In this document: one piece after another, positions 3,201 to 26,634 of the stretch | Numbering within the stretch: position 1 is the stretch's first letter | How the letters are laid out: every line of letters starts with the position of its first letter | DNA from: Klebsormidium nitens | Lineage: Eukaryota; Plantae; Klebsormidiophyceae | DNA: 38,836 bases | Direction: 5' to 3' | Assembly (NCBI GenBank): GCA_000708835.1 | Contig: DF237685.1 | Coordinates: 1-38,836, forward strand | Notes under the pieces: generated by a model | Database searches by the model: none | Told to the model about the DNA's origin: nothing | What the model saw: only the letters and a program-made list of their open reading frames with translations | Program-made: the position numbers and the translations under genes

Positions 3201-6174
3201 GCCTGCGATCCCGTCGCAGAGGAGGATCGCAGGATGAGGCCCGCAGATGCTGCAGCACTCCAAAATGGAGCGACCGCAGAGCTTGAAGAAGCCCATACTC
3301 GCCTTCCGCCAGGTTTCGCTCGACAGAGGTTTGGCACCCGGCGAGTACAACCGGCGGACGGCGTTCTTAGCCTCTATAAGAGCGTTGCAGGCGGAGCCAG
3401 TGCCTTGCACGCATCGAAGCAGCAGCTGACACGATGCTTGTGTAACGATGACGCTCCTCGTCCATGCGTACAAGCCCAGAGCTTCTCCGTTGAAGTGGAC
3501 CGTGTGCTTCTCCGCACAGTTGCAGCAGTAGATGCGGACCTTCACCTGCATCCGAAAAGCGGACACGAGATAAGCTCATGTGGTCTCACAAAGGCGAAGA
3601 AGAGAACAATACGGTTTGGATTACGAGATCGTTCTCACGATTGTGATCACAATTGAATACCGCTAGTGCATGTGTTGTCGGCGTGCGTAACTTCACGGAC
3701 TCTTATGGTGACCGAAGCGTTACTTAATCGCAAGAAGAGCACCTTTGGTTTGGTTCGTTGGACCACATTGAAACCTGCAAACAGATGGAAGCTTGTCCAG
3801 CATCTGCGAACTAGATTATGCATGAAATCTGCAGAACCTGGACAACCCAGGCTCAATAGCGTGCATGGAAAAAAGCCTATTGCCCGGCCAACAGAAGCTC
3901 GGGCTGTGCACCTTCCTTTCTGTAGGTATGTCTAGTTGTCCAGCTTCTGCAGTCTAGATTATGCATAAAATCTGCATGATTTAGACACCCCCGACATCGT
4001 GCTTGACAAATGCAGAACCTACAAAATCCTGTTACTGTCTGTGACAAGAAGAGATTGCCAACTTGGAAGTTTGGCTTGAGCACCCTCTTCTTGATAGGTT
4101 TGTCTAGCTAGCTGTCCAGCTTCTGCATCCTTTGATTATGCATGAAATCTGCAGAATCTGGACAAGGCCCGGCACTCACCTCTTGGGACCAGTCCAAGGA
4201 GTAAATGTGCGACACCTGCATCAGGCTCGACCAGCCTGTCCCACAAGGTGGCGGCTCCTTCGGGCAAGGTGCGCACAAGCACTCAATCCTGCTCAGCTCC
4301 TCGTAATCGCGCGCCGTCAGCTGGCTGACTCTCACCGGCTGCTTCAGGAGGGTGACGGGCGGGTCGTGAACGGCCGAGCCGTCGGTCGGGCGTACCAACT
4401 TCGGAGTTTCCACCTGAACGCCCTCTGCACCCATGGGCATGACGATGGCAACCCGTGCTGGCTCTGCGTGGAGGCACGCCGACGAAGGGCAGGAGCAACT
4501 CTCACAGACGCGGACAACACCCCCCCTGTGCCCCCCCGCAGTGCACCCGGCCGCCCCGGTGTTGGCCGCCTCTCCATGCTCACCACCCCCCGTTTGAGCG
4601 GCCCAAAAGGCTTTGGACCTCCGTTTCACCCCTCGCTGTGCGGACGCCCCATCCTCTACCGTCTCCTCCCGCGGACGCTTTTCGGGTGAGCTACTGTCTG
4701 CGGAAGTACAACACCGACCTTCGCAGGGCTGCTTATCAAGGCTCACCCCCCCAAACAGCGATGGATGCTGTTGGCAGAAGCAAGCGTCGCCCTTGCACAC
4801 CGCGTCGTGCTGCTCTCCGGCGACAAGACCGAGGAGGTAACGCTCCTCATCTGGCAGGGCCTCCAGTTCCTCTCCGCCCGCGTTGCTTGCTCGACATTCT
4901 TCACCAGCTTGCGGTCGATTGCAAGCTGCATCCTCCTTTCCAGCCGCCACCTCTCTCTCCTTCCGGTACAGCCAGCCCCTGGCGCGCTCCAGCTGAGTTT
5001 CCGAAAAGAGACACCCCTCCAGTTTGCTCACCCTTCTCTCCTCTCCAGTGCTCTTTTCACCTCTAAAAGATGTCCGCAGTCCGCAGTCTTGCTGCAGCCC
5101 TCCCGTCTTCCTTCGCAATACCACTGGAAGTCTGCCTCCGCGTCGAAGTGCACCATCGTTCTTTCGGGGGAGGGCGAACTCGCATTCCAGAACACCCCAA
5201 ATACTCTCTGCCCCACGGTGCTGCACGGCACCTCCACCACCCGCGGCCCCTTCTGAAATGACAAGTGGCTTGGTTGTTGACGCTCCTGGAGGGCTTGCAA
5301 TGCCAGCTTGTGGACGCAAGCTGCGTCGAAGCTCAATCGACCACGATCGCACGTGCAACTCGGGTTTCCCATCGTGTCCCAGTACACCGTCTCGAGTAAC
5401 GCCGTGTTTTTGCTGGGCCGTTCCAGCGGCTTTGGCCTGGCAGCATTGTGGTTCCACGCGGTCATCAGGAAGACAGGGCTGCTGACCCCCGCCTCCCCAG
5501 TGCTATAGATGGAGCAGTAGCCGGTTTTGATGTTGGCCAGAAACCGTGCAGCTTGGGCAACGAGTGTGAGCTGCCCGTTCGCATCTCGGCCTTCCTCTCG
5601 TCCGCAATCCTGCAAACAGGTTTGAATACCATGGATCAGTCAATTGCCTGAAAGATCTGGAAAATTCAAGTGTGCTCGACGATACTCTTTCCAGATTCAG
5701 GATCTAAAGGAAGGCTTTAAACTGCTAAAGTGAAGCTACGAAAGTTCCTTCTGTCCACATCCTGCAAGTCGTAAAAGCATGATTGGCCGCCTTCGTCCAG
5801 ATTCTGCATATCTTATTATTGTGTTCACTTCCGCAAAATCTGGACACACTAGAATTACGATTCATATCTGCTATGCCACACTGTAGCGGCGGTCTAGCTG
5901 CAAGGATCCAAGAGCAGCTAGAACAACTTTCCCTCGCTCGAAAACAAGTCACTTTTTGTTGGACCGTCCGCGGAATCTCTCCTGCTTGGCGGCCTCGGTT
6001 CAAAGCAGCTTCGGCTGCGGATCTGCTGCGCTTTCGGCCAGCTGCCTCTCTGCTCTTGGCATCCAATGTTTGCAGCCGAATGACCTCTTCTCCGGCCAGA
6101 ACCTTCTGTTGGCGCCAAGAGCCGGTGGGCTGTGCAGTGCGGTCGAACCAGATTTCTGGTGGACCCCGGCCCAT
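289..6174 (-). CDS. KDZ (Kyakuja-Dileera-Zisupton)-class DDE transposase, multi-exon, with SWIM-like and CxC Cys clusters
   Basis: Phase-consistent GT-AG model on the minus strand: exons (start uncertain)-5953, 5609-5032, 4978-4180, 3545-2913, 2246-961, 586-289. The last five exons total 1198 codons with no internal stop. Motifs: SWIM-like CTCD..ACVH; PCGTGW..YSLDWSQE|VKVRIYCCNC..HFNGEALGLY (CxC); CSICGPHPAILLCDG (first acidic residue); GGFVFCCPHRVIYGFH..GESPRD; FYDNAC; VDR|FH..GHKC (rebuilt across intron 587-960); NTSAVESCN. The 5' end and the exon content of 2247-2912 are uncertain. Confidence 0.85.
806..857. repeat. Intronic palindromic unit (TGTCYAG.TTYTGCA-N20-24-TGCARAAYCTRGACA)
   Basis: TTGTCTAGGTTCTGC...GGCATATACAAA...GTGCTGAATCTAGAC. 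Same arms and spacer as the units at 2237-2771. Confidence 0.75.
2237..2518. repeat. Three dispersed copies of the palindromic unit in both orientations
   Basis: Units at 2237-2289, 2321-2373 (spacers reversed) and 2459-2518. Confidence 0.8.
2532..2823. repeat. 89-bp tandem repeat (~3.3 copies), each unit containing the palindromic motif
   Basis: TGCCAACCTCGTCCAGGTTCTGCAG recurs at 2532, 2621, 2710 and (variant) 2799, a period of 89. Confidence 0.95.
3793..4165. repeat. Three palindromic units with the second spacer type (GATTATGCATRAAATC)
   Basis: Units at 3793-3845, 3936-3987 and 4113-4165, inside intron 3546-4179. Confidence 0.8.
5795..5845. repeat. Palindromic unit in intron 5610-5952
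   Basis: GTCCAGATTCTGCA ... GCAAAATCTGGAC. Confidence 0.7.
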
Positions 6175-7272: not shown

Positions 7273-10200
7273 ATGGCGGCCATGTCTTCAGCTCAGCTGG
7301 TAAGCGCGCTCCAGGCGCAGCAAGAGAAGATTGAGAGCAATGCCGACCGCCCTGACAGAAGCATTCATTGCTGTGGCAGAATGCATGGAGAGCTACTTTT
7401 ACGTCAGCGATCTGGCTGTCCAGTCTGCGGAAGTCAAGGACTCGATGGCCAAGTTTGGTTGGGCCTGGCTGGAGCTTCCTGAGTTCCCTGTGCGCAAGCT
7501 TTTTCCAGCTGCAGCAAAGGCACTGCAGCAGTTCCCCGAGCACAGGGGCCTTGTGCTGGCAATTGCGGACTGGTGCACCGATGCTTGCAAGCAGAGTGTG
7601 ATTGCGAAGCTGGAGGCGCTGCGCTGTAGGATGCTACAGGGCCTCTGCCTCGCAGCAGGGCATCTGGCATTGAGAGGAAGGTTTGATAGCAACGGATACA
7701 TGATCGCTGGACGCATCTTCGAAGCAATGCAGAAGGCTGCAGAGACTCCGAGCATCCAATTCTACTCGCGTCCAATAGAAGTCAAAGACGAGTTCTACTC
7801 GGCAGCGAGGGACGCCTGGCGTGAAGTCGGACTAGAAACGGTTGTAGCCACCTTGGAAGAACCCCTCCGCGAGAGGTTTGGAGCTGTGAACCACGCACTC
7901 CGTTTAACAGCATACTTTCTGAGAAACCACTCAGGGGTGGTTGAACTCACGAACACAGACCACAGTGTCGCAACAACGCAGTTGTACCTGGAAGTCTTGA
8001 AGAGCATGGGGGAGGCGTTTGGCAACACATTCCCTGGATTGGCAGGGAACACCGCTTTTCAGAGGTGGGTCCCACAACAGTTTGTGTGGTTTGTAAGCAG
8101 TTCCTTTTGTGACTTGGTCAGCGCAGACTCAAACATAAGCTAAGAATGAGGTTATTAAAGTGGAGTGGTGGTCAGTTGAAGTAAAAGCTTGACATGAGGT
8201 GGCCGCCAGGTCTTCGTCGCTTTCAGGAGCATGTCTTCAAGCTGTACTTTGCATTGGTCATTCTATTGTTGTAGACACTTTGCATTCCTGGCCAATCTAA
8301 GGGGGGGGAAATCCTGCCCCTGTTTTTGGGGACGTGAACTAGTAGATATTGTCCGAACGCTGAACCTCTCAAAATGCAACCCGAAGCCTTGAACATTCCT
8401 TGTCATTCGTTAGCACAATTCACTCAAGCAAGATATTGGATACACAATGTTCCAATCGCCTATGCTGTACACCGATCATTGGCTCCAAGCGGCTTAGGTC
8501 TGAACCACGTCATCGCGACCAGCCCAAAGATATGGTCAGTTGCTTCCCCTTTTGGATAGATATCAAAGCGCCAAATCAAAGCCCTTTTATCCTTCTCAGG
8601 TATCTGAAAGGTACTCTTCGGGGGATCCAAGCAGGATCCTCCTTGCCAGGATCCCCCTTTGGAGATTGCGCCAATCTGGCTAAAGAGGCCTTGCTGATTT
8701 ACGAACGAACAATCAATCCTCTGGGCGTCCCTTGGGATCAGAGGTATGCTAGCTTTTCACATGCTCTATCCATCAAATATCTGCAAACCTTTCTGAAGTC
8801 AACCTGCTTAAAAGTGTTCAAATTCGATTTACAGGGTAATCAAGCAGCGCCAACGGATCATAGGGTCCGTTTCAGGTTGCTGAGAGGGAATAGAAACATT
8901 AGTAAGTGCTTTCACACTGAGCTTCGATGTATTCAGGGATGGCTCGCACTTTCATGCCGAGAGTAACGTGGATGAAGAGTGTGATACCGGCACGAGTTTG
9001 TAACGGAACAGACAAACGCAGACCTCGAGACCCAAGTGCTGACGTCAGATTAATGTTGCACTTCCCGAATGCCCTCTTGACGTTCGCTTTTCAAGAGACC
9101 GTGTCTTCGGTAACGTGGAAAGCCAGGACGGATCCGGCCCCAAGGTTTTGGGACAAGTTACCGCTGTCCATCGCTGTGCGCCAATCGTGCATATTCAGAG
9201 ATCCGGATGCATGCCACGTTAGTCGTGTCATAAAGCCTGCCTACTGCCCTCGATCAATCAGCTTTGCGATTGGGTCTGCAAGAACCTTGATCGCAGAACC
9301 TAGAGAAGGACTCAAAAGGACCGTTTTAAGAGAAAATGCTGATGTATGTTCAGATTCAGGTCCAGTTTACTGAGTCTCTTCTGCTCGTCCTTCTAGAAAC
9401 CCGTGCCTGCTGACCGCCCTCAACGCGCATCACCAGCAAATCTCTGACGTCAGCCAGCTCGAGATCTCGGCTGAGGTCATCGCTTACAGCGAACTCCGCA
9501 AAGATGTCAGGCGAGAGATCTTGGGGATTGCAGGGACGTGCGCTGCGGCAGATGCCAAAGCAGGCGTCGAAAGCAGCTCAGCAGGTGACTGTGTAAACCC
9601 TTGAATTGCCTCCTAGCTTCCTCTGAATCCATTATGGCGAAAACCTTTCCTAACATAACCCAAACAGCGACCAATCTGATTTCTGAAGCACCCTGATCCG
9701 TCGAGATGAGTTTGCTTGTGAATGGCGTGCGAGACAAGAGCTTCAAAGCATCGTCACTGGTCACTCCTCGCTTGGCAATTGGGGTGTTCGCGTGATAGAG
9801 CCCTCTCTTTGGCATCCATTGTTCTGACGCTTTTCATGTTTGTAATGGAACAAGAATGCTTTGCGGACTGAGTCTTTAGTCCAAAACACTGGCTAAAATG
9901 TCGGTTTAACAAGGATGATTGTGCTTATTGACGTTTAATATATAAAGTACACCATCGGACGTGATAGCGCAGGCTGAATGCAGAAGTTCGCGATGGCCAA
10001 AATCGCAGCGCTATTGGTCGTTTTTTGATTTAAAGACTCCAGTCTGCAAAGTTCAGCCTGGGGGCCGCAAAGCTTGGCGGGACAGGCCCGAGATGCGGAT
10101 AACACGCAGCTAACAAGCGCAAGCGAGAAATCTGAAGCGTTATCCCTAAAAGTCAAAGTCTTAACGGCAACGCTGCGAATCTCTGTCGTCCCCCAGCTAT

Positions 10201-11206
10201 TCTGTTGTCTGCGTTCCGCCGGCATCTGCTTGCTGTGGATCAACCATTCGTCCGACCCGCCAAGCGATTCTGAACAGGTCGTCAGGCTTTTACGGATTCT
10301 AGGCTAGACTGCGGCACCTAGTTTCGCAGACAGCGCGTCTGATCCGGCGGATTCGGCTTGGCGCTTAGAGGACGGCTTGCGTGGCTCTCGGCTTATTGGC
10401 CCCGTACCTACCTACTGACCACTTTCGCTGATTTGTACGAACCCTCAGCCAGAAAGACAGGTTAAGCGAATCGGAGGCCCGACAAGCTCACATAGGGCTA
10501 CTAGAAGCTGGCACAGAACGGGCGGTTGAAAAGGTCCGTGTTTCTCTCTCCGGGCTTCTCACTCTCTCCCCGCTTTTGCGCAGGCCCATCCGGTCACAAC
10601 GAAGATACCAAAAACGAGCAAGCGGGTGACGCCTCCACTTCCAAGCGGGAAGGGAGGGCGAAAGAACGCGCGTGCGCCAAGTGTGGAACAACGCAAAAGC
10701 AGCGTGGCTCTGGAGAGCCGGCTTTCAAGAAATGCTCGCGCTGCATGTCCACGTACTACTGCGGACCCCAGGTGACCAGACTTGCTCTACCTCGTTGTGC
10801 TTTGGTTGTTCGTCTTGCCTTGGCGATGATACACTAATCAATTGCAGAAAAGGGTGTCCGGTTTTGGAATCTGGGGCCTCTCTAAGAATGAAAGTGTCCG
10901 ACTTTGTTTCCGAAGCAGATTTAGGCGTGGAGAACCGTTGAGTAAAGTTGTTTGTCAGGGTTTGGCGTGATTCTTGGCGTCCGAAGCTCTGCTTTTGCCG
11001 TCTGGAGAGTGTACTAAGCAGAATCTAGTGCGATCCGAAGGTGGCGTGCGCTGCGACGTCTTCCTTACATGGGGACATGCCGTACTGAACCATCTGTCGC
11101 GCCAGAAACACCTCATGCACCGGATCCTGAAGAGTGTACGTTTCTCCGCTTGCAGTGTCAAAAGGCCCATTGGAAGGAGCACAAGCCTGTGTGTGTGTCT
11201 CGATAG
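7273..11206 (+). pseudogene. Helical-domain + MYND zinc finger gene, copy 1 (type I), frameshifted near the N-terminus; possibly translated from ATG 7340
   Basis: Exons 7273/7340-8064, 8600-8743, 9397-9584, 10584-10771, 11156-11206, all phase-compatible. MYND: CAKC..CSRCMSTYYCGPQ|CQKAHWKEHKPVC. The ATG 7273 frame aligns with the paralog N-termini but is out of frame with the rest; ATG 7340 gives 431 aa. Confidence 0.75.
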
Positions 11207-12441
11207 ATCGTTTCCCGTGAAGCCTGCTCGGGGAACCTGTACAGAGAACCGCTAATAAAAGATCAGATCAGTGCTACGATGGCGAGGTAGGTAATCTAGA
11301 ATCTTTTAGCATCAGTACAACCTCTATGTACCGTAGTCCATATCAGTGCCTCAATATACGAGGGCGGAGCAATCTCAAGAGAACAGATCCCGTACATAAG
11401 CCAGCAGGTCGTAACTAGCGAGTCGTCTTGGGGCACTTTACAGGAAGCCCGGCCTGAGATCGCCGGCACTCGTTCACTGCCATTGGCAGACTTTGAAACT
11501 TATGCTTTTGGCTTCAGCTGAGCCGCGAGCATGTCAGACCATGCATGAGTCTCTCATGAGTCTTGCCCGCCTACTGCCAAATTTGACAATTGGCTCCGCT
11601 ATATCTGTGGCAGCTGAGCATTCTCTCAACGAACTAGTACGCGGGCCTGCATGCATGCGACGCCGCCAACTGCAATCTGTAATGTGTAATCTACATTATA
11701 ATGTTATAACATTATAACGGGCTTTGTGAATTGATCGACGTGTACGTTGACAGGAACTTGTCCCGCTTTTCCAATTTAGTGCATATGATCAGGCTTATAT
11801 ACTGAGTATTGAATCGAAGCATGCATGTCAGTGTAAGTCGAGCTTTTCGGACCGCGAGCTTGCATGCACATGTGTCTGATCGTCCGGCGCGGTTAATATA
11901 GCAGCACGCGACTGAGTCCATGTGCATATCTCACTGATGCTCTGAGTCTGGAGCCGGATTTAGAGCGGTCCGGCTCCGCCCGCCACGCGGGTTTTCGCGA
12001 GCGCATACACGGACGGGTCGAGGTGCAAACCACATAAGCCACGCGCCCCGCCGCGCCAAGCCCACAGAAACGGACTACAGTACGGTCATGCTAGCGTGTG
12101 GTTGCTAGCCTACCCAAATGGCCCGCAGTACCGTATTTCTTACGGCATGCTTTAGCAACTCACAACCATCGTGTCAAGCTACTTAAATCTGGCATTACAT
12201 CGGTCGTGGGCTCACGACTTCACGAATCATCAACAAGAGACCTATCACAACGGCTTCGTCACAAACAGCCCCGGGATTTCGTGCTTTGTGACTTTGCGCC
12301 AACGGCTTGCAGGACGAATTGCAGATTGCCTGTATAGGTGTATCTTTCTAAGCTAAGAGAACGAAAGCCAGGATCCAAATCCAGTGTTACTATCCCGCCT
12401 TTTTAGCATTTGTTATTGATTAAAGGTTCTCCAGGAGCAGA

Positions 12442-12492
12442 CTATGTACGGGCACACACGAGCTTGTGCTGCTTCCAGTGAACCTTTTGACA
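12442..12492 (-). pseudogene. Orphan terminal MYND exon (CQKVHWKQHKLVCART*), displaced from copy 3
   Basis: TTTGCAG|TGT CAA AAG GTT CAC TGG AAG CAG CAC AAG...TAG. Closest to the last exon of copy 1. Copy 3 lacks this exon downstream of 17386. Confidence 0.85.
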
Positions 12493-12822
12493 CTGCAAAC
12501 ACCAACAATCGCCTTCAGTACCCATGTCCGTACTTCGTAGCACAATCAGCAAAAAACATTCAAAAAACACGCCGCATGCAGTTCTCTTTTCGGATCTTCA
12601 CCGGCAAAAAGGAGAGAAATACACAGGCAACGTGCCAAGATGGTTCTTAGACTATTTCGCATATTCTGTGGAATATCAATATCATCCCTGGCAAAACGAC
12701 ATTTCTATGTCCAAACGAAGTAAAAGGTTTCGAGAGTCGTCGCAACCAAACATTTCCCAATGCCGTAAGCAGATCTATGTCACGGATTCCGAAACTTGTC
12801 CATATTCAAAACAATCTCTTGA

Positions 12823-13271
12823 CAAAGATGCGCTCGGCAAAGAGCATCTCATCCTGCGAGAAAGTCTCAGACAGCGCCAGCTTTCCTGCTGCCAGGCAGA
12901 GGCCCTGCAACATCCCGCACCGCATCGCCTCCATCTTGGCAATCATGTAAGTTTTGCTTGCAAAAGTCTGTGCAGAGATCCGCTAGGATCAGCAGAAGAC
13001 CCCTGTGTTCAGGGTACCGGCAGAGAGTCCTAGCTGCTAGAGGCAGAAATCTACGGAGAGGAAATTGGGGCAGCTCCGCCCACCACCAAGCATGTCTAGT
13101 CCTTGATTCCAGGACTTCTGGAGACTGCCTTTCCCGAGCGCTTGTCGAGAAATAGTCAGGCACAAGCTCGGATACGGCAATAAAAGCACGGGTGAGAGCC
13201 GCCGGATTGTTGGCATTGCGCTCAATCTTTGCGTGCTGCTTCTCAAGCTCCTGCACCAGACGAGCTGCCAT
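12823..13271 (-). pseudogene. 5' half of exon 1 of MYND-family gene B (type II), with a 4-nt frameshift insertion
   Basis: MAARLVQELEKQHAKIERNANNPAALTRAF... is collinear with copy 5. AAC-TTAC-ATG replaces AAC ATG at ~12945-12950. Homology stops abruptly at CGC ATC TTT G (12823). Confidence 0.85.
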
Positions 13272-13436
13272 GTTTGCCGTCAGTGGCGCCCGAGACTGGT
13301 TGATCAAAGAGCGCCAGCAATTTTATAACTCATCTTTTACCCATCGCTTCCACGCCAAATCATGGTCGATTGGTTCACCCAGTGGCCTGTGCCTTTCCTC
13401 GTCGCTTGCGCATCTGCAACATGCTCTGCCAGTACT

Positions 13437-13470
13437 GAGCTGTAGGAGCTGTAGGAGCTGTAGGAGCTGT
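13437..13470. repeat. 9-bp tandem repeat (GAGCTGTAG)x3.8
   Basis: Read directly from the sequence. Confidence 0.9.
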
Positions 13471-13537
13471 CCTATTGGTGACTCGACCACTGGTGAAATC
13501 CGAAATTTTGTTTGAAGGACGAAGTCTTGAAGTCGAG

Positions 13538-13591
13538 GGGATCCCCTTGCCATTGGTTCCCGCCACTTTAACTTGAAGGTCGCCGGCAACT
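13538..13591 (-). promoter_or_regulatory. Conserved upstream block of the type II MYND genes (gene B copy)
   Basis: GTTGCCGGC..AAAGTGGCGGGAA..AGGGGATCCC is shared with 21552-21595 upstream of copy 5. Confidence 0.4.
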
Positions 13592-13906
13592 GTTGCCATT
13601 GGACAGAAATTGAAGCTCCAGAACCGAGAATGTGGCGCACCCTGAACAATGGAGCAGCAAAGTAGGGCTTGCATTTGGTAAGAAGAGATAGACGTCTCAT
13701 GCAGGCGCTTGACTCTGTTCCAAGGGACATAAGGGAAGGCATTCTGAGTCACCTGCAGTCTCGAAAGTTAGACCATGCATTTAACTTCTGTTGGCCGTCG
13801 TGAGGCAACTTGCGGCTGTTGGGAGGTTAAGCTGAACTTGCAGTGAGGGTGCATTGAATCTGCAGATTGCGCTGACGGAAACTCCTCCCTCTTGGAATCT
13901 GTGGAG

Positions 13907-16900
13907 ATGGCGTCAATGGATGCGGCCCAATTAATGAGCTGTGAGCTCTATTTCCATAAAGTCACCATTGACCAGAATGCCGACAACCCAACTGTCCTCA
14001 CAGAGCACTTCATTGGAGTGGCAGAGTGCATGGAAGAGTACTTCAGCATCAGTGACAAGGAGGCGCAATCTACAGAAGTCAAGGAATCAAGATCCAAATT
14101 CGGTTGGGCTTGGTTGGAACTGCCCCAGTTTCCAATGCGCGAGCTGCTGCCAGTTGCAGCGAAGGCCCTGCAGCGATTCCCGATGCACAGGGGCCTTGTT
14201 TTGGCCATTGCAGACTGGTGCATTGACGTCTGCAAGTCAAACGTGCTGGCAAAGATGGAGGCAATGCGATGCGGGATGCTACAGGGCCTCTGCCTGGCGG
14301 CAGGGCACTTAGCTCTGTGCGAGACGTTTGGAAACGACGAGTACCTGCTAGCTGGATGCATCTTTGAGGCGCTCCGCAAGGCTGCGGAGACCCCGAGCCT
14401 GAACTTTTTCTCGCGATCAATGAAAGTGAAGGACGAGTTCTATGCAGTTGCAAGGGAGGCTTGGTTGGGGGTCAGAATAGATACGGTTCTGGAGGCTTTG
14501 GAAAAGCGGGGAACGTTAATGAACTTTGAAGGGCCGCAGGCACCGAACCCGGCACTCGTGCTGACGGCCCTCTTCCTGAGAAAGGGCTCGGACTGGGTGA
14601 CAATGGAGCTCTATCTGCAAGTGGTGAAGAGCTTGGGGGAGGCGTTCGGCAACACGTTCCCGACAATTGCTGAGAATCAGGCTTTCGAAAGGTGAGCCAA
14701 CAATTTTGAAGGCGCCTGAAGCTTAGTACAAATTTGCTGTCAGCTTCTAAAGAAAGGCCTGAGGTGATGACAAGGTTTCAGTGACTCATTGCTGGCGTGC
14801 ACAAGCGGACGCTATGGTACATGGTAGGAAGGCCGTCGTATAGCTCGGCCATATGCCCCATTGGATGTCGGAATGTGTTTAGGAAAAGATCTCGTTTTGG
14901 TGAGTTCTGAGTGTCCGAATGCACAAAATCTGGTTAAAGAAGGAGCAATAATATCCTGACATAGTGCACAGCGATCAGCTGTGACTGCAGCCCAGACAGC
15001 CAACTACGGCGACAGGCTGGCTTTAGCAGTGGGTGCACCAATGGGGCTTCTTCTGTGCATCATGTTCTTGGTCAGTGTAGTAGATTAGTATGGATTTTGT
15101 TTGCCATGCGTGTAGACTCTCCTACAAAAGTCCGAAGTCAACTGGGAAATCAAGTCCTCTGAAAGATACTGCTTCGAAACTCGTTCCATCCCTACAGGTT
15201 CCTGAACGAGACTTTCGAAGGCTTCCGGGGCAAGGTCTTGCCGGACGCCCGGTTTGGCAGCTGCGGCGATCTGCTCGATGAGGCCCGGCTGATTCACATG
15301 CGGAGACTCTACCCTTCTGACATTCCTTGGGACCACAGGTATGAAGAGACGTAACAATGTGTGTTTCGCCATGATGCTGACTGCAAGTTCCGTGGTACGC
15401 CTCGTACTTGAGCGCAAGGACTGATGTTGACGGCTGTGATTACCCGTATGGTGATGGGTGGGAGTACGACGATAGTATGTTGATGGTCGGCTATGGTGTG
15501 CCATGAGATATAAGCGGCTCAGCCATAGGAACATGCATTTACCGAGAAGTGCATGAGGTCGCTTGCTTAATCGTACAATGGAATAGTCTTCTTTAAACTA
15601 CCGTTTCTAAACTCTGCTCAATGTTAGCTTCCGCTGCATCAAACTGCCAGAGAGGCACCCCCTCGCCTGAGCTAACTCCTTGGTTATAAAGTTAACTCCT
15701 TGGTTATTGTGCTAACTCCTTGGTTACAGAGCTATCATTTCACTCCTTGATTATAAAGCACGACGGGGTACCCATGGAGCAGAATTAGCACGAGTACATA
15801 TGTTTTCTTCCCTACACAGAGCTTCTGGAACAGGCTTCGCATTTTGAAACTAGAGTAGAGTGCAATCATGTTAGGGGCTGCACTCGGACCAGAACCGACC
15901 AAACTAAATCCTTCTCAGAGCATTTCATTTCGCGGCACTCATTCCAAGTCCTCGTCTTGCTTCCAGGAACTCGTGCCTGAATCCAACTCTGAACGAGCTC
16001 TATCGGAACATCTGCACCGTCAGCGAGGCGCAAATCTCGGAGCAGGTTGTTGTGTACAACAAGATCCGTAGAAACGTACGGCGTTAGCACTTGAAGTCTG
16101 CCAGGAGATTTGCTGAGGCCGATGCTCCTAGCAGCAGTTCGGCAGGTGACCACCTCGAGGCCCTAGACTCCCGTTCTCAAATTGGGTTTCGTATTTCCTG
16201 TTCTTGTTACGACCTTTTCCGACAGAAGTTTTGCATTGCATTCTCTTTACTTTTCAGGGCCTTCTCCGATTGGAGTTGTGCAATCTCTATTCTTACTAAG
16301 GAAAAGGTCCTTCAGATTGTAAGATTTGAGTCAAAATGGTTAGGTTTTAGACAAGCTCTCCGGAAAAGTTTCCGCTTCCAACCCACTCGGGTTAGGGGGT
16401 TGTCAGTCGAGTCGCATGGTGGAAGGGCATCTAATCGAGCGGTGCCCAGGTTTGTTAACTGCGTTTTTCTATTCCCCTTCTTCTCACTATCTTCTCACGG
16501 TGGCGAACATCAGGTTCATTGTGAGCCGGTTCACATTCGACATCAGAAAGTGCTGATAACTGCGCGAGGTTCAGTACTTGCTCCGGTCCCACTGTTCCTT
16601 GGCTCCTGACGTGTACTGCGTCATCAAGCTCATCAACTCACCAGGTCTCGTCACAACTTCGTTCTTCATTCAACCACGGCAGTTGATAAAACTGTCTGCT
16701 ACATACTCTCCATGCGCTTCCCACGGCTTCGCTTGCCGTGCTCTGATTGAATTTATCGGAGATTCGTGTTCCAGCATCCACTTAAGGCCTGGCATGGAGC
16801 AAATCTTGACTAGAATAACGCGCCTGGCTGCTTAGGAGCATCCGGTTCCAAATGTGTCAGCCCACGGAGTGATCTGCGCCTAGATTCGCTCAAGTTCCTG

Positions 16901-17386
16901 CAGCCGCCAGTCTTCTCCAAGCCTTTAATCAGGCTGCGCTTATAGTTGCGGAAAAACTTGGGAATATGTGACTAGAAACATTCGACGCCTTACATTTGGG
17001 CCTAATCACCCCGGACATCTACCTTCAGATTGAATATATTGCGTAGACGCTACCTTCACTCTGAAAACGTACTCCAATCTTCTTCAGCGATTTTGTTTCG
17101 AAGAATCCTTTTTGGCCTCGTTGGAAGCTTCTATCCTCATCGTTTCGCAGGAATACCCGCCAACAGCGGGGCTGTTAACATCAACGACAGTGCGGGATCA
17201 TTAGGCACAGCAAACACGGGAGCCTCACTCGAAGCGGGAGAGGCCTCTACCCCCCAGCCGGGGGGCCGGAGAGCGAAAACCAGAGCTTGTGCGAACTGCT
17301 CGAAAGACCAGAAAGAGCGCGCCCCGGGGGAGCCCGCTTTCAAGAAGTGCTCTCGGTGCATGGCCGTGTACTACTGTGGACCACAG
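13907..17386 (+). pseudogene. Helical-domain + MYND gene, copy 3 (type I), with a nonsense codon and a displaced last exon
   Basis: Exons 13907-14691, 15198-15338, 15967-16145 (in-frame TAG at 16085-16087), 17151-17386 (CANC..CSRCMAVYYCGPQ|). No terminal exon follows on the plus strand. Confidence 0.8.
15671..15757. repeat. 20-bp minisatellite (GCTAACTCCTTGGTTAxxxx), 3 copies plus 1 degenerate
   Basis: Units at 15671, 15691 and 15711, inside intron 2 of copy 3. Confidence 0.9.
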
Positions 17387-17411
17387 GTGACTAACTGTTG
17401 TACCTTTTTTA

Positions 17412-18054
17412 CTACGAGTCAGCTGAGGATAGGTGGACAATTGAGGGATCTGAAGAGGAGCAGCGGGACTGAGGCACAGGCAGAGGAGTGGTCAAAAACT
17501 CTGCCTTAGTTTCAAGAAGCAACTAACATGAGAAGGAAAGAAGGCATACACATCCACAGCGGTGTAACGTACGCAGGCACGCGCGCCCACAATATGCGGC
17601 TACAGTAACAAACCCTCTCTGCCAGAATCAAGGCAAAAGCACATGGCCCCAAGAAGTTCAAGTTGCGTGAGGGATAAAGCATTGAGAATTTAAAAAACAA
17701 AGAGAGTCCAAGCAAAAACCCGGACTCACCTGCTGAATGCAGTATTCTCGGCCACTGTGGGGAACTTATTTTCGAATGCCTCCGCAATGTTCCTCACGAC
17801 TTCGAGGTAGTGCTCCGTGTTGGCCGCGTCAGGATACTTATTGAAGTAATGCAACGTGAGCAAGAGCGCATGGTTCGCTGCTGGTGGCCCGTCAAAGCCC
17901 TCCCATCCCTCTCTTTCTGCTAAAACCTTCAATTCGGTCCCCACATCGACCTCGCCCCACGCGCTTCTCGCCACGGCGTAGAACTCGTCTTTGACGTCTA
18001 CCGGCTGCGCATAAAACTCGATGGCTGCGGGCTCCACAATCTTCCTGAGGGCGC
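17412..18054 (-). pseudogene. Inverted 3' half of exon 1 (18054-17730) plus part of intron 1 of gene B
   Basis: (G)ALRKIVEPAAIEFYAQPVDVKDEFY...AENTAFSR|GTGAGT is collinear with the 3' half of copy 5 exon 1. Intron similarity to copy 5 runs to about 17412. Confidence 0.85.
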
Positions 18055-20496
18055 TGCTGATCTACAAGCGGACCTTGAACCCCGCAGAGCTCCATTGGGA
18101 CCACAGGTATCCTCTTTGCGTCATACACATAACATCCATTTGTTGTGACATGTACACATGATCTGTACACATGATCTTTTGTGGCAGATACATCTGTTTG
18201 ATTCGGCGGAGCTGACAGCATGTCGATTCATGGCAGGTTCCCTTAGCGCGCTAACTTTGTTACGGTCAATGTCATCTCCCAGCAGCCTTCAACGTAAGAT
18301 ACTCCAACGAGAGTGCTCTCCGTGAGTACGTAAGACTGTTACTTACTCATCATGTGCTGTCTCTGAGCATGAAACACCCATTTTCAGTGGCTCTTGGAAA
18401 CTGGTTTTGAAAGACACTCTGCCTCGAGTCCTTTTCCATCTTCCGAGTGGCTGCTAATATTGCTTCCCCGTTGCTGGAGAAGTGTTCCTCGATCCTGGAG
18501 GGAAAAAATTGCTAGAACTGGAGCAGCTCAATCTCGGAACCACTGATGTATGTCACTTCTGAGTAAGCCGGACCATTTGCGCCAAATCTTTGCTTTCCTG
18601 GAGATGAGCTGTCCAGAACGTGCCAACTAGGGCCTCTTCTTGTATGTCCAAACCTCACTATGCAACGAAACTCAAAGCTTCGATCTGACACGAAAACACA
18701 GAAAACAAGCTCAATAGATCTCCAACTTTCTTGCAGCGTACCAGCGCTGCTGCCTGAGCTCAACGACATGTACCGGCAAGGTGGCGGCGTCAACCAGGCC
18801 CCGCTCCCCATGATTGTCGCTAACTACAATGCGTATCGCCGCGACTATCGGGCAACGGTCTGCCGGACCGCTCGCAAGTATGAGTGCACCTGCGCGCAGT
18901 GCGAAAAACTACAGAGCGAGCGGCCGTCGGGTGACCCTCTCTTCATAAGGTGCTCTCGCTGCCGGAGCGTCTTCTACTGCGGGCGCGAGGTGAGGCGTTC
19001 CGCTTTCGCTTTTTGAAGCTTATTCAAGGTTTTTGAGCTGAGCGACTGTTTCTTTCCCTTGTTACTTGTGAAGCGCAGCCTTTGCCGCACCCAGGACCGA
19101 ATTCAATCGGTGACTGGTCCTCCTGATTTCTCCTGCGGCAACGTGAGGCGTTCCGATTCGGTCTCATGGGTTCTCAAAACGTCTTTGTACAAGTGTTTCA
19201 ATCAGTTTCTTTGTTTTCGAAGTCAGAGCTTGCTGCACCTGTCACGATCACGAAGGTCTCCGTCTTTAGGAAGCGCTCGCGCGGTTGGGGCGTGTTCCTA
19301 CTGCGGTCCCAACGTGAAGCTTTCAGCGCTAATTTTCTGGGTTCTCTTTGTCATCTTTCTTCCTTTCTTTCGACTGTTTCAATGTTCCGGTAAGAGCAGG
19401 CTTTGCACCCGTGATTACACCAGTTAACGAAGCAGAGCTCCCCGTCTTTGACAAATGTTCAGACAACCCGAGTGTCTTCCCCTGCGGGGACGACTGTGAG
19501 GCGTTCCGTTCTGATATCTTGGAATCTCTTCGACGTTTCTTGTGCACTGTCTCCCTGTTGCTTGTGAAGGGCAGAATTCGCCGCACCCTTGACCTCACCA
19601 CATTCAACAAAGAAGGAACTTTCCGTCTTTCAGAGCTCCTCCGCCGAAGCGTGTTCCAGTGCGGGTTCGAATCACTGCATTCCGCTCTCGTCTCCCTCCA
19701 TGCTCGTCGTTTCTGTTCGCCCGCCCCTGTATTCAAACAATCGGGGTTTGAGTAAGTCAGGCTCGGTGGAATCGTGACCATACCGGAATCATGAGAATGG
19801 AGCTTGTGATACCTATCCCGATGCCAGCCGTTAGAGTGCGCAGCGTATTCGATTGCGCGCTCAATGCGAGCAGGAGGCCGTTATCGGTCCAGTCGCTTTT
19901 CTCTGTGCTAACGCGTTTCAATCTGGACTGACAAGCGTTTTTGCCCCACCGCACGGAGAGAACCATGAGTTTTGTGGCCGTTCCTAACTGACCCGCCCAT
20001 ATTTTCTTTTCTGATGCGTCTTCTATCTTTTCGGGCAGCTTGCAAGAACCACCTCGAGAATTGGTTGAAGCCGCTCGGATTAATCTGAGAATCTGTGTGG
20101 GAAGGACAGATCAGAAGCGCAAGTTCCTTCGCCAGATTCTGCTCCCAAGTGCGAGAGCTGGCGGTTTCGATTCAGCTACAGGTCAATTTCAGAGGGTTTT
20201 GTGCGGCTGTAAACCATTAGAAAGCAGGTCACGACTTCTGCATGCGAGTGACTTCTTTGTGCACGTCGTACTCAGAATCATGTCGGATGCCAGGCGTTCT
20301 CGCCTTGACCAACGTGACGTCCTGCATACGTCCACAATAGCGTCACGAATCCAGTCTGCAGTCTTACTCCGAGCTCCTGAATATCCTCGTCAGATATCAC
20401 GGTCCTTTTTTTGTCCACTCATCCTGTTCCTGGTCGCCCCTGCAGTGTCAACGGCTCGACTGGACGGAGCATAGGCAGGTCTGTGTTGCACCGTAA
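18050..20496 (+). pseudogene. 3' part of gene B: end of exon 2, MYND exon, terminal exon
   Basis: 18050-18106 ALLIYKRTLNPAELHWDH; 18737-18989 VPALLPELN..CAQC..CSRCRSVFYCGRE|; 20446-20496 CQRLDWTEHRQVCVAP*. The 3' flank resembles that of copy 5. Confidence 0.85.
19110..19760 (+). repeat. Array of about 5 decayed copies of the MYND exon end + 5' splice site
   Basis: Recurrent ...GTCTTC/TTCTACTGCGG...GTGAGGCGTTCCG-like units near 19130, 19290, 19480, 19650 and (partial) 19730. Confidence 0.75.
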
Positions 20497-21780: not shown

Positions 21781-24700
21781 ATGGCGAGCAAGCGACGGCC
21801 ATTGATTAGTAATGTTGCTGGTGCTGTTGTACTTTTGCTGGTGCTGTTGTTGGTGCGACGGGCATGGATGAGCAAGTCTGTTGTTGCTGGTGCTTTTGTG
21901 ATTTTGCTGGTGCCGTTATTGGTTCTGGTAGGCAGGTTGTGTCGGGCGCCACAGACGTCAGACATGGCACCTGGTCTGCTGCGAGAACTCGAGAGGCTGC
22001 GCGCCAAGATCGAGCGCAATGCCCACAATCCGGCCGCCCTTACCCGTGCCTTCATCTCAGTGTCTGAGCTCGTGCCTAGCTACTTTACAACGAGCGTTGG
22101 CGAAACACAGTCCCGGGAAGTATTGGAATCAAGGACAAGGCACTCTTGGCGATGGGTGGAGCTGCCACAATTTCCCCTCCGTAGATTCTTGCCTTTGGCG
22201 GCCAGGGCGCTCTGCCGGTTCCCTGAAGAAAGGGGCCTTGTGCTTATGATAGCAGACCTCTGCACAGACTTGTTTAAGCAGAACATGATTGCGAAGATGG
22301 AGGGGATGCGGTGTGGGATCCTGCAGGGCCTCTGCTCGGCTGCGGGGCAGGTGGCGCTGTCCGAACCTTTTTCACAGGATGACATGCTGTTTGCGGAGCG
22401 CATCTTTGGGGCCATCCGGAAGGTGGTAGAGCCTGCAAGCATCGGATTCTACTCGCAGCCGGTAGATGTCAAGGAAGAGTTCTACTCCGTGGAGAGAAGC
22501 GCGTGGGGCGAGGTCAATGTGGGGGACACTCTGAGGGTTCTGGCGGCCCGAGAAGGTTGGGAGAGCTTTGACGGGCCACCAGCTGCAAACCATGCAATCT
22601 TGCTCACGCTGCATTACATCAAAAAGCATCCTGCAATGACGAACATGGACCACTACCTCGAAGTGCTGAGGAACATTGCGGAGGCGTTCGGAAACATGTT
22701 CCCTACGGTGGCTGAAAATGCTGCATTCAGCAGGTGAGTCGCCTGACTTTTCGGTTGGAAACTCTTTGCTTGTATGAGTCAGAATGTGTCCCCTCTTACG
22801 CGACTTCATATGCATAATGGTATGTTTTCATTTTGGCTAAATGTTTTTAGCAATTTTGCCCTAAAGCTCCTGGCAAAATGGTTGGCTGTGGTGGTCACAC
22901 AGTATGCCCGCGTGGGTGATATGAAATAAGCACAGGCTCTTGAGATTGGAGGCACCAGTCACATGCCATTCTTCTGCCTGTGGTCGTCCCTCTACTTCTG
23001 GTCACCCCCCTTGCTGAGACGGCACAGTCTGCAAAGCTCTCTATGCACTTCTCTTGTGGCTTTGTTTCTCTTCACTCAGAGAATTGCCGGCCCAACTTCC
23101 TCGTAGCTGTCAGGCGCCGTTGAAACCCTCTCTATCTTCCAAAGCTAGCATCCATGAATCCTCCTTGCTATCTTCCCACTTCAAGCATTTTTCCCAAGTG
23201 CATTGCAGAGTGTCTCACGGGTGCCTCATGCTTGGGGAGTGGAGAATGCCTCCTTCCTCACAGGCATGCTTCCGGCAGTCATTTCAAAGCGGTGTTGAAG
23301 CACATCCCCTGGTCTACTCACACTTTCAAGCTCTCCGCCTTTGCAGCTTTGTGAAGGACACTCTGGAAACAGCCAGAAGGCCGGCCCAGCCACAGCACCT
23401 TACACGGATCCAAATGGACCTGATTGATGAGGCTCTGCTGATCTACAAGCGGACCTTGAACCCCTCCGAGTTCCCTTGGAATCACAGGTATGCGCTTTGC
23501 GCCACACAATTGACCAACTGATTGTGTTCACACCCTTGAGTATGTCAAGAGCTCGATCATCAAGGAGGTTTGTGCTGCGGTTGAGAGGATTGCAGCTTTT
23601 TTGAGGCATGCTAGAGTACGCGGGAGGTTTCTATTAATCACAGTGCTTTCCTTCAATATGTGAGTGGTGTAACTCACTCAACATTTTCTGTCCTTGAACA
23701 TCAATTACCCATTGAAATGGCTCTTGGAAAACGGCTCTGAATAATACTCAGCTCAAGCCTTGTTCCACCTTCGAAGAGGCAGCTAATATTGCTCTCTTTG
23801 CAGCAGTATCTTGCAGCGAGTCCTCTGAACGGAATCGTTTGCTAGCTCCTGGAGGGGTTCAAGCTCAAAAGCAGTACAGTATGTCAATTCTGATCAGCCA
23901 AGCCAAATTTTTCGGCACTGCTGCTTTCACACCAATGTGAGCGGATTGATACATGCAGACAACGGACCTCTTCCAGGCCTTGGAATTCTCATAGTCAACG
24001 AGATCACCAACAAGAAAACGCCAGCATGTCTCCATCTTCTTCTCCTTTTTTCTGATTTCACCGCAGGGAGGAGGGTGGGTATCCCCCCCGGGTGGGGTTC
24101 CCTCGGATCCACACGACTTCGAGGGTTCTAAGGATACTTCAAAATCAACCGGGCTATGCTCCCGGCCACCCCCTTTTAAGATACGACAGAATTACAATAT
24201 ACGGGTTTGCGTTCGAAGTGTAACCTTTTGAATGACCTGGTGGGAGCCGTGTTGAAGCGGGTACCTTCGTTCGGTCTGGACCGTTTGTTGGAGGTGTAGA
24301 AAAGAATTGATTAACTGATGACCGTATTTCGGTTTGAAAGAACCGATTCCGTGTAGAAATGTATTCAGGCAACCGACAGGATGCATGTCTCCATCTCCTG
24401 CAGCAAACCGGCGCTGCTGCCCGCCCTCAACCGCTTGTACGTGCAAGGCGCCGGGCTTCTCAACCTGGTCCCACTCTCCCTTCTCGTCGGCGCCGAGAAC
24501 CTGGGTCGCCAAGAGCACAGGGCGACGGTCTGTGAAACCGCTCGCAAGTATGAGAGCACCTGCGCGAAGTGTTCCAGGCTGCAGAGCGAGAGGCCAAGGG
24601 GGGATCCCCCCTTCAGGCGGTGCGCCCGCTGCCAGAGCGTCTTCTACTGCGGAGCCAACGTGAGGCTCTCCGCTCTCTTCTCTTGGGTTTCTTTAGCCTT

Positions 24701-26634
24701 TCTGTTATCTTTGTTTAGTTGCTTTGGTTTTCTTGTGAGAGACACTCTGACGAGAACGGATCGACGAAATCGAATCTTCCCATAGTGCCCTCGCTGCTGG
24801 AGCATCGTCGACTGCGGACCCGAAACGAGATTTTCCGCTTCCGTTCCTTCGATTCTCCTCGGCATAGATGTTCGGCGTTTCCGGTTGGCTTCCTTGCTGC
24901 ACCTCTAGCCAGAGTAAGTCGATGACAACGAGATTCTCCACATTCGGAGACTGCTTCCGCTGCCAGAGCGTCTTCTACTGCGGATTAACCGCGAGGCTGT
25001 CCGCTCTCGTCACTTGGGCTCCCTTCAACGTCTTCTCAGTCGTTCTTTTATTCTGTATCATTGTTGCTTGTGAATGACAGACTTTGCTGCACCCATGCCA
25101 AAAGCAAATCGATTAAACCGTAGTGCTCCCGCTGCGCGAGCGTCCTGTTTTGCGGACCCGACGTGAGGCTGTCCGCTCCTGTTCCTTCAGATCTCTTCGA
25201 TCATCATGTTCTTTCTTTCTGGTTTTCTTCCCTGCTGCGCCCGTGACCAAAGCGGGTTGATGACAACGAAAACTATGACGTTGGAGAATTGTTCCCGCTG
25301 CCGAGGCCTCTTCACCCCTTTCCTGATTATCTCTCTGTTCCTTGTCAAAACGTAACCTTGCACCCCTTGACCTTACCAGTAGGAGTTCCCCGTCTTTGAC
25401 AAATGCTCAGCTTACCGAAGCCTTTTTGAGTGCGGGGTTTACTATGAGGCGTTCGTTCTCGTTCTTGGGTCCTCTTCAACGTTTCTTTGCACCGTCTCCC
25501 TGTTGCTTGTAAAAGGCAGATAGTTCCGTGACCATGATTAACAAAGAAGAAAGCTCTCCGTGCTTCAGAGCTTCAACCGCAGGCGAAAGAGTATTCAAGT
25601 TTTGTATCTTGCGCTTGGTGAAATCTGTGTATCCTTTGTTTCCTTCCTCTGCTACTCGTGAATGCAGAGCTCTTCCGCCCGTGCCCTACTGATTCTTGAC
25701 TAGAAAAGGTCTCAGTCTCTGGAAAGTGCCGTGCCAGAGGAGCGGGTTCTATTGCGGGTTCGAGGCGTTCCGCTTTTGGTTCTCTTGGGTACGGTTGAAA
25801 GACCTACTTCGGGCTTGTCTCTTTGTTCACCCTCTTTCTGTAACAGTCCGGTCATTCCAAATTTCAAGCTCTTTGGAGCTTGCGACCTTAGCAGATTGAC
25901 GAGACCGGAGTTCTGATAGTTCCCTCAGGATGCGAAGCGTCTTCGACTGCGGGCGTGGCGTAAGTCAGTTGGCCCGTCTTACCTACTTCATTGTTTCATC
26001 GCGATTTAGCCTCCTTTTTTTGTGCCGCCCCGTTTCACAGTGCAAGTGTTTTTTCGGCGAGGACCGTAAATTTTCCGGCCATTCCTGCTTGCACGTACTC
26101 CTGTTCCTTTTCGACTTTTCGTCGTATCTTTCCCTTTCCTGTCACGTTCTTCAAGCTTTTAAACGCTGCGTCGGCTGGGCTGCTTGCAAGATCATCCAGC
26201 TCGGAAACTGAGAAAGCGACTCGAGCCCTCTGAATAATTTGTGTGGAGGAGCAGACTAAAAGCCGCAACCTCGGTCGCCGCAATCCTGCTTTTAGAGCGC
26301 AAGAGGTGGCGGTTTGTCAGCTTCGTTCACAGGTCAACCCCCGAGACTTGTGTGCGCCTGTAGGAGGTCACGACTTCATGAAAGTGGCCGCATTGTGCAC
26401 ATCGAACTCAAAATGTTTACGCTGTGGGTAACTTCGCCTTCGCCAGCGTCCGGCGCACGCCCGTACACTAGCGTCTCGACGGATTTGAGTCCAATCTGCA
26501 GTCTTCTCCAAGCTACGAATATTCTTGTCAGATATCACGGTTCTCTTCTCGTCCACTCATCCCGTTCCTGGTCGCCACTGCAGTGTCAACGGCTCCACTG
26601 GAGGGAGCATAGGCAGGTCTGCGTTGCACCATAA
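21781..26634 (+). CDS. Intact helical-domain + MYND zinc finger protein, copy 5 (type II), 466 aa, with two N-terminal hydrophobic segments
   Basis: Exons 21781-22733, 23347-23487, 24404-24659, 26584-26634 total 1401 nt, in frame. MYND: CAKC..CARCQSVFYCGAN|CQRLHWREHRQVC. Confidence 0.85.
24024..24396. mobile_element. 345-bp insertion flanked by a 14-bp direct repeat (TSD-like)
   Basis: GCATGTCTCCATCT at 24024-24037 and 24383-24396. The segment between is absent from the paralogous intron of gene B and has a T-rich left end. Confidence 0.55.
24785..25975 (+). repeat. Array of about 8 decayed copies of the MYND exon end + 5' splice site
   Basis: Units near 24786 (CPRCWSIVDCGPE), 24950 (CFRCQSVFYCGLT), 25124 (CSRCASVLFCGPD|GTGAGG), 25290, 25390, 25550, 25730 and 25930. 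Confidence 0.8.

Follow-up and report, generated by a model that had tools for sequence, protein, structure and literature searches.

Two adjacent flipped segments interrupt neighbouring MYND-finger genes of the alga Klebsormidium nitens and probably stem from one three-break event

The stretch of DNA analysed here (the window, 38,836 nucleotides (nt); contig DF237685.1) is an entire 38.8-kb scaffold of the charophyte alga Klebsormidium nitens NIES-2285 and carries a tandem array of genes encoding MYND zinc finger proteins, two of which, copy 3 and gene B, are interrupted by two neighbouring segments that lie flipped in place. The segments (4.6 kb and 0.64 kb) are bounded by three junctions, and turning both of them around returns the terminal exon of copy 3 to its gene and rejoins the pieces of gene B with a near-perfect fit at the middle break. 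The most probable origin of this arrangement, to which a probability of roughly 65% is assigned, is a single event with three breaks, after which the two fragments were closed up by non-homologous or microhomology-mediated end joining. Under this reading the DNA would have been cut in the last intron of copy 3, in exon 1 of gene B and in the intron 1/exon 2 region of gene B; each freed fragment would have been reinserted in its own place, flipped, with ~0.4 kb lost at the third break.

The scaffold has ~51% G+C, genes with introns and no N at any position. Members of the array share an unnamed N-terminal region of ~300 amino acids (aa) followed by the C-terminal MYND finger, and their exon structures were obtained by mapping annotated proteins back onto the window. 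Two intact paralogues on the plus strand were used as rulers. Copy 5 (21964-26634; KFL_007360030), the ruler for gene B, has four exons (21964-22731, 23345-23485, 24402-24659 and about 26584-26634), the first of which returned the 100% identical K. nitens protein KFL_007360030 in a protein search, while copy 1 (7340-11203; KFL_007360020, 431 aa) was the ruler for the exon structure of copy 3. The annotated counterpart of copy 3 is KFL_007360040 (348 aa), and gene B is without an annotated protein. Throughout the family the last intron splits the MYND finger: copies 1 and 5 match all 39 of the 39 positions of PF01753 (40.1 and 39.8 bits, respectively; Pfam cut-off, 22.7), and a finger exon on its own reaches only positions 1-24 to 1-30. 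Additional homologues were available from a related alga, represented by the Logan contigs of run SRR23617307, namely a 19-kb contig (SRR23617307_608705, here L002/L003) and the second protein-search match (L001). Introns of K. nitens and this relative differ by a Kimura two-parameter (K2P) distance of ~0.24-0.25.

Gene B is spread over three pieces. The first part of its exon 1 (part a, 12823-13271, minus strand; start codon at 13271) corresponds to copy 5 21964-22408, and the second (part b, 17732-18054, minus) to copy 5 22409/22411-22731. Part b is followed by the 5' part of intron 1 (17444-17731, minus; 57-59% identity to intron 1 of copy 5 and of L001). The remainder runs on the plus strand (18050-20496). 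It begins with 57 nt from the end of exon 2 (18050-18106) and goes on to exon 3 (about 18734-18989), which encodes the finger's first part, and to exon 4 (20446-20496, including the stop codon); all of these are open. The first-pass annotation of the window had proposed the placement of the three pieces, and comparison of the window with itself and with copy 5 (self-BLASTN, supplemented by local alignments) recovered it: copy 5 21939-22408 is matched by 13296-12823 (minus) and copy 5 22411-22771 by 18052-17695 (minus), after which the match resumes on the plus strand, with 18050-18127 on copy 5 23431-23508, and gene B stays colinear with copy 5 to 20683.

When parts a and b are aligned with three intact homologues (copy 5, L001 and L002), part a ends at column 78 and part b starts at column 79, with neither gap nor overlap, in agreement with the earlier proposal that part a, set opposite intact copy 5, stops where part b begins. 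The stronger form of that proposal, a join with no base lost, is accurate as to the abutment and slightly too exact, as 0-2 nt appear to be missing (see base 18053 below). Were the two fragments independent and their ends random, an abutment of this kind within a 768-nt exon would be expected about once in 768 cases. The reading of the end of part a as ERIFG also needs a qualification, since the frame holds only after the shift introduced by a 4-bp insertion (TTAC, 12949-12952) relative to copy 5, L001 and L002. This insertion is the only frameshift detected in gene B and is unlikely to be a 454 sequencing error because it does not lie in a homopolymer.

As far as sequence can show, parts a and b are pieces of one gene. 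The two parts are equidistant from copy 5, L001 and L002 (K2P, 0.20-0.25), and in separate trees they take the same position, outside a well-supported pair of copy 5 and L001. A derivation from different paralogues, named beforehand as the finding that would overturn the rejoining, was therefore looked for in both distances and trees and failed in each. That the two parts and the plus-strand remainder are unrelated partial duplicates of different paralogues, brought next to each other by chance, draws some plausibility from the tandem duplication of the family and from the different copy numbers of the two algae. It has to contend with fragments that abut exactly at one homologous coordinate, with the shared distances and tree placement, with a window in which no portion of gene B occurs twice and with the contiguous gene that the relative has at this position, and its likelihood is close to nil.

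Copy 3 (13907-17386, plus) retains exons 1-4, all of them open, and ends at the donor of exon 4 (17386|GT), which encodes the first part of the MYND finger only; by itself this exon scores 19.1 bits against PF01753 (positions 1-24 of 39), below the cut-off. The missing end of the gene lies on the other side of part a and on the opposite strand, where a stranded terminal exon (12442-12492, minus; 16 codons and a stop, reading CQKVHWKQHKLVCART) encodes the last third of the finger. It is 87% identical to the terminal exon of copy 1 at 11150-11195 and 82% identical to the sequence at L002 5450-5553, directly downstream of the finger exon of the copy 3 orthologue. Between this exon and part a lies the distal part of the last intron of copy 3 (12493-12822, minus), with weak intron homology to L002 5554-5793, which adjoins gene B at junction 1. 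Both the abrupt end of copy 3 past its exon-4 donor and the minus-strand location of its terminal exon had been noted at first reading, and the sequence is as described there. Gene B and copy 3 are divergent, and the spacer that separates their start codons (13272-13906) moved with both genes and has a similar length in L002 (9231-9861). A short triplet-repeat-like stretch occurs within it, at 13436-13471.

The order of the same array in the relative provides the ancestral state. Its 19-kb contig carries the copy 1 orthologue on the plus strand, followed by a terminal exon of copy 3 (L002 5450-5553) that corresponds to window 12426-12530 on the same strand. The finger exon and body of copy 3 (L002 5933-9231) follow 380 bp beyond this terminal exon and correspond to window 17393-13906, inverted. 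Further along, a gene B-like exon 1 is undivided, with L002 9861-10338 corresponding to 13291-12825 and L002 10347-10698 to 18048-17700, both inverted and contiguous with one another. Exon 2 is complete in the relative (L002 11127-11264), and the stretch that includes its second half (L002 11210-11269) corresponds to window 18050-18109 in direct orientation. This order and orientation are exactly those predicted by undoing both flips.

A virtual un-flipped sequence was constructed with a local script and searched by BLASTN. Each of copy 5, L001 and L002 then gave a single match of 814-842 bp spanning the joint between parts a and b, and the L002 blocks of copy 3 fell into the order and strand of their flanks. 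Together with the order in L002/L003, these single matches strongly support the proposal that both genes are restored, copy 3 on the minus strand and gene B on the plus, once 12823 to ~17411 and ~17412 to 18054 are flipped. The ancestral order reads copy 1 (plus), copy 3 (minus), gene B (plus), copy 5 (plus), and the K. nitens arrangement is the derived one because the gene structure is contiguous in the relative as well as in copies 1 and 5, the intact paralogues.

Each of the three junctions can be placed with a different precision. At junction 1 (12822|12823) the homology of part a stops exactly at 12823. Junction 2 falls in a zone (17387-17443) in which 21-25 nt from the start of copy 3's last intron (plus) meet the cut intron 1 of gene B (minus); intron homology of copy 3 with L002 extends to 17407 and that of gene B intron 1 with copy 5 and L001 to 17443/17444, bounding the junction to 17408-17443. 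A breakpoint at ~17411 had been suggested and is consistent with this interval, which is as fine as the position can be given. Junction 3 (18050-18054) consists of GGCGC, which can be assigned both to part b (minus) and to exon 2 (plus). The microhomology reported at this site is present, as 3 nt perfect or as 5 nt with one ambiguous base: base 18053 mismatches all three homologues of part b and agrees with the exon 2 side, and the exon 2 site of L002 is natively GGCGC. The shared break is taken to have lost 0-2 nt because base 18053 fits exon 2 rather than the homologues.

At the third break a segment is gone. The intron 1 homology of gene B reaches ~17444, equivalent to copy 5 ~23011, and the loss therefore amounts to ~385-420 bp, including the first 86 nt of exon 2 (copy 5 23345-23430); a previous figure of ~325 bp is corrected accordingly. 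Beyond this deletion the junctions are plain. Templated filler was not found at any of them, self-BLASTN of the window returned no duplicated segments, the ends of the flipped segments carry no inverted repeats (inverted local alignments of the junction zones score at the median of shuffled sequences), and transposon ends, terminal inverted repeats and target-site duplications were absent from all three.

An 11-mer, GGACCACAGGT, is identical at 17378-17388 and 18098-18108 and exceeds the shuffled maximum. It was considered as junction homology and set aside, as neither occurrence is at a joint: one sits at the splice donor of copy 3 exon 4, ~25 nt from junction 2, and the other at that of gene B exon 2, ~45 nt from junction 3. 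The identity is probably chance plus the donor consensus.

Before a mechanism is weighed, the possibility has to be considered that the assembler misoriented the 4.6-kb and 0.64-kb segments and that both genes are intact in the alga. The genome is a 2014 draft from short reads and 454 data, assembled by Newbler from 454 and Illumina reads (PMC4052687), and public data were examined for the region. In two DNA runs of the likely source sample, the share of 605 sampled 31-mers of 12450-18400 that are present is 1.00, a value that allows at most ~3 of the 605 words to be missing as against ~9 that span the junctions. Further, the stretch is continuous without N and its junctions have no repeats that could mislead an assembler, misorientation would not explain the ~0.4-kb deletion with its 86 nt of exon 2 or the frameshift of part a, and in the public annotation copy 3 is truncated and gene B absent. 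An assembly artefact is accordingly judged improbable. In 16 further runs, drawn from six studies, 53-74% of the sampled 31-mers are present, a share taken over 12450-18400 as a whole. Exact look-ups with two junction-spanning open reading frames (ORFs; 17895-18221 minus and 12524-13030 plus) returned no contig, the Logan contigs of K. nitens apparently not having been gene-called there, and a word search with the ORF of part b had no match in the same collection, which apparently lacks gene-called K. nitens contigs.

Taken as real, the rearrangement broke three ancestral adjacencies and formed three new ones, which amounts either to two inversions with a common breakpoint or to one three-break event. 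We infer that all breaks belong to a single event, because a second inversion would have to recut the old joint within 0-2 nt and no stray bases were carried to junctions 2 or 3. A series of two simple inversions, the later one cutting again at the breakpoint of the earlier, would by inference be the shortest set of simple operations that gives the present order. This history is a rather unlikely one, given the recut that it demands and a site at which no repeat or hairpin indicates fragility. Recombination between repeats and a switch-like invertase are both excluded because the segment ends are without inverted repeats.

Transposase action, proposed at first reading as one of two mechanisms, finds little in the sequence to sustain it. 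Against alternative transposition driven by a nearby element, the junctions have no inverted repeats or transposon sequence, no target-site duplications and no inserted element, the locus being colinear with the relative apart from the flips. The three large ORFs of the upstream gene ~7 kb away (957-5457, minus) had no Pfam match (E <= 0.01) in a quick scan. Such an origin is regarded as highly improbable.

The other mechanism proposed at first reading, replicative template switching, merits closer comparison. Under fork stalling and template switching or microhomology-mediated break-induced replication (FoSTeS/MMBIR), a stalled or broken fork would have switched templates three times by way of microhomology and copied both segments in reverse. 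The locus resembles FoSTeS/MMBIR products in having several junctions within one small region and microhomology (3-5 nt at junction 3) at at least one of them, and template switching is a common explanation of complex germline rearrangements (PMC2621351; PMC3638133). The usual marks of FoSTeS/MMBIR, however, are duplications, triplications and templated insertions (Hastings et al. 2009, PMC2621351), whereas here copy number is unchanged except for the loss, nothing was inserted from a template and one breakpoint is cleanly common to two junctions. At this middle break the points of departure and landing would have to coincide within 0-2 nt, which is automatic for a double-strand break and for which replication offers no reason. 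Because the middle break retained its two sides nearly whole, a double-strand break fits better than template switching, and the replicative origin is considered unlikely.

Three concurrent breaks followed by end joining also have a described counterpart. A balanced pattern with short microhomology has been attributed by Malhotra et al. (2013, PMC3638133) to the end joining of concurrent double-strand breaks, and the chromothripsis- or chromoplexy-like events of that study share with the K. nitens locus three clustered breakpoints, fragments that were reoriented and religated, a balanced outcome save for a small deletion, short microhomology at the join that can be scored (junction 3) and an absence of templated insertions. 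They differ in scale and setting, as the rearrangement described here is tiny (5.2 kb, two fragments), arose in the germline of a haploid alga rather than in a tumour and left its fragments in their original slots.

Several points weigh against an origin by three breaks and end joining, or limit how firmly it can be held. Microhomology can be judged at junction 3 alone, the ancestral intron sequences being too diverged at junctions 1 and 2, and the preference for end joining is a moderate one; the choice between end joining and template switching rests mainly on the balanced architecture. The relative is a positional proxy for the ancestor rather than a proven one-to-one orthologue: the trees do not resolve gene B and its positional counterpart as sisters (bootstrap support, 59-62%), the synonymous divergence (dS) between them is ~0.9 compared to 0.37 between copy 5 and its orthologue L001, and the array of the relative has one extra copy. 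Additionally, the three junctions rest on assembled sequence and the word share, and the share of 1.00 comes from runs that may be the assembly's own source.

Setting aside the breaks and the 4-bp insertion, gene B and copy 3 have open exons and intact splice donors throughout. The ratio of nonsynonymous to synonymous divergence (dN/dS) is 0.11-0.24 for the pieces of gene B and 0.11-0.18 for the intact exons of the gene B/copy 5 type (copy 5, L001 and L002), and the branch length of gene B is ordinary. The event is recent relative to the split from the relative because the exons remain open and have evolved like those of working paralogues. Its consequences are the loss from copy 3 of the exon for the last third of the finger and a gene B in three pieces that should be unable to make a continuous message, and the genes of this family look dispensable. 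The rearrangement explains why KFL_007360040 is annotated without a zinc finger (the model is truncated, and the annotated copy 3 protein has no MYND match in Pfam) and why one member of the family is absent from the gene set.

The terminal exon of gene B (20446) now lies downstream of the exon-4 donor of copy 3 (17386) and shares its strand and phase. If used, a splice from 17386 to 20446 would join parts of the two broken genes into a complete MYND finger. Such a rescue of copy 3, coupled with an unusual proneness of K. nitens NIES-2285 to clean kb-scale inversions in its tandem families, is a long shot.

Two protein searches found relatives of these genes only in K. nitens, one Logan run and one Joint Genome Institute (JGI) record; a metagenome scan with copy 3 exon 1 as the query found none, and the ~300-aa N-terminal region matched no Pfam family. 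The family is lineage-specific, and the locus is a well-resolved instance of an ordinary natural mutation: a known kind of change, revealing no new mechanism or function. Its value is that of a natural three-break rearrangement, polarised by an outgroup, in a streptophyte alga that serves as a reference species for the terrestrialisation of plants, and the double flip could serve as a strain marker.

Other differences and degenerate features occur across the array. The extra member in the relative (L003 2113-2916; P0006, a 267-aa exon 1) lies upstream of the copy 1 orthologue, a place that in K. nitens is occupied instead by a large minus-strand gene (~600-5950). In-frame stops and a frameshift interrupt the copy 3 orthologue of the relative (L002 5940-9180), in whose MYND finger a Cys is also changed to Tyr, and the copy 1 orthologue (L002 1-700) has a frameshift in exon 1; the gene family seems to be decaying in both lineages, or the Logan contig contains errors. 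Within the window, the last intron of copy 5 has an internal direct similarity of ~69% (24626-25269), and the upstream gene region holds tandem repeats of ~75-90 bp (2471-2821; 81-86% identical), with related copies at 805-860 and, inverted, at 2230-2283.

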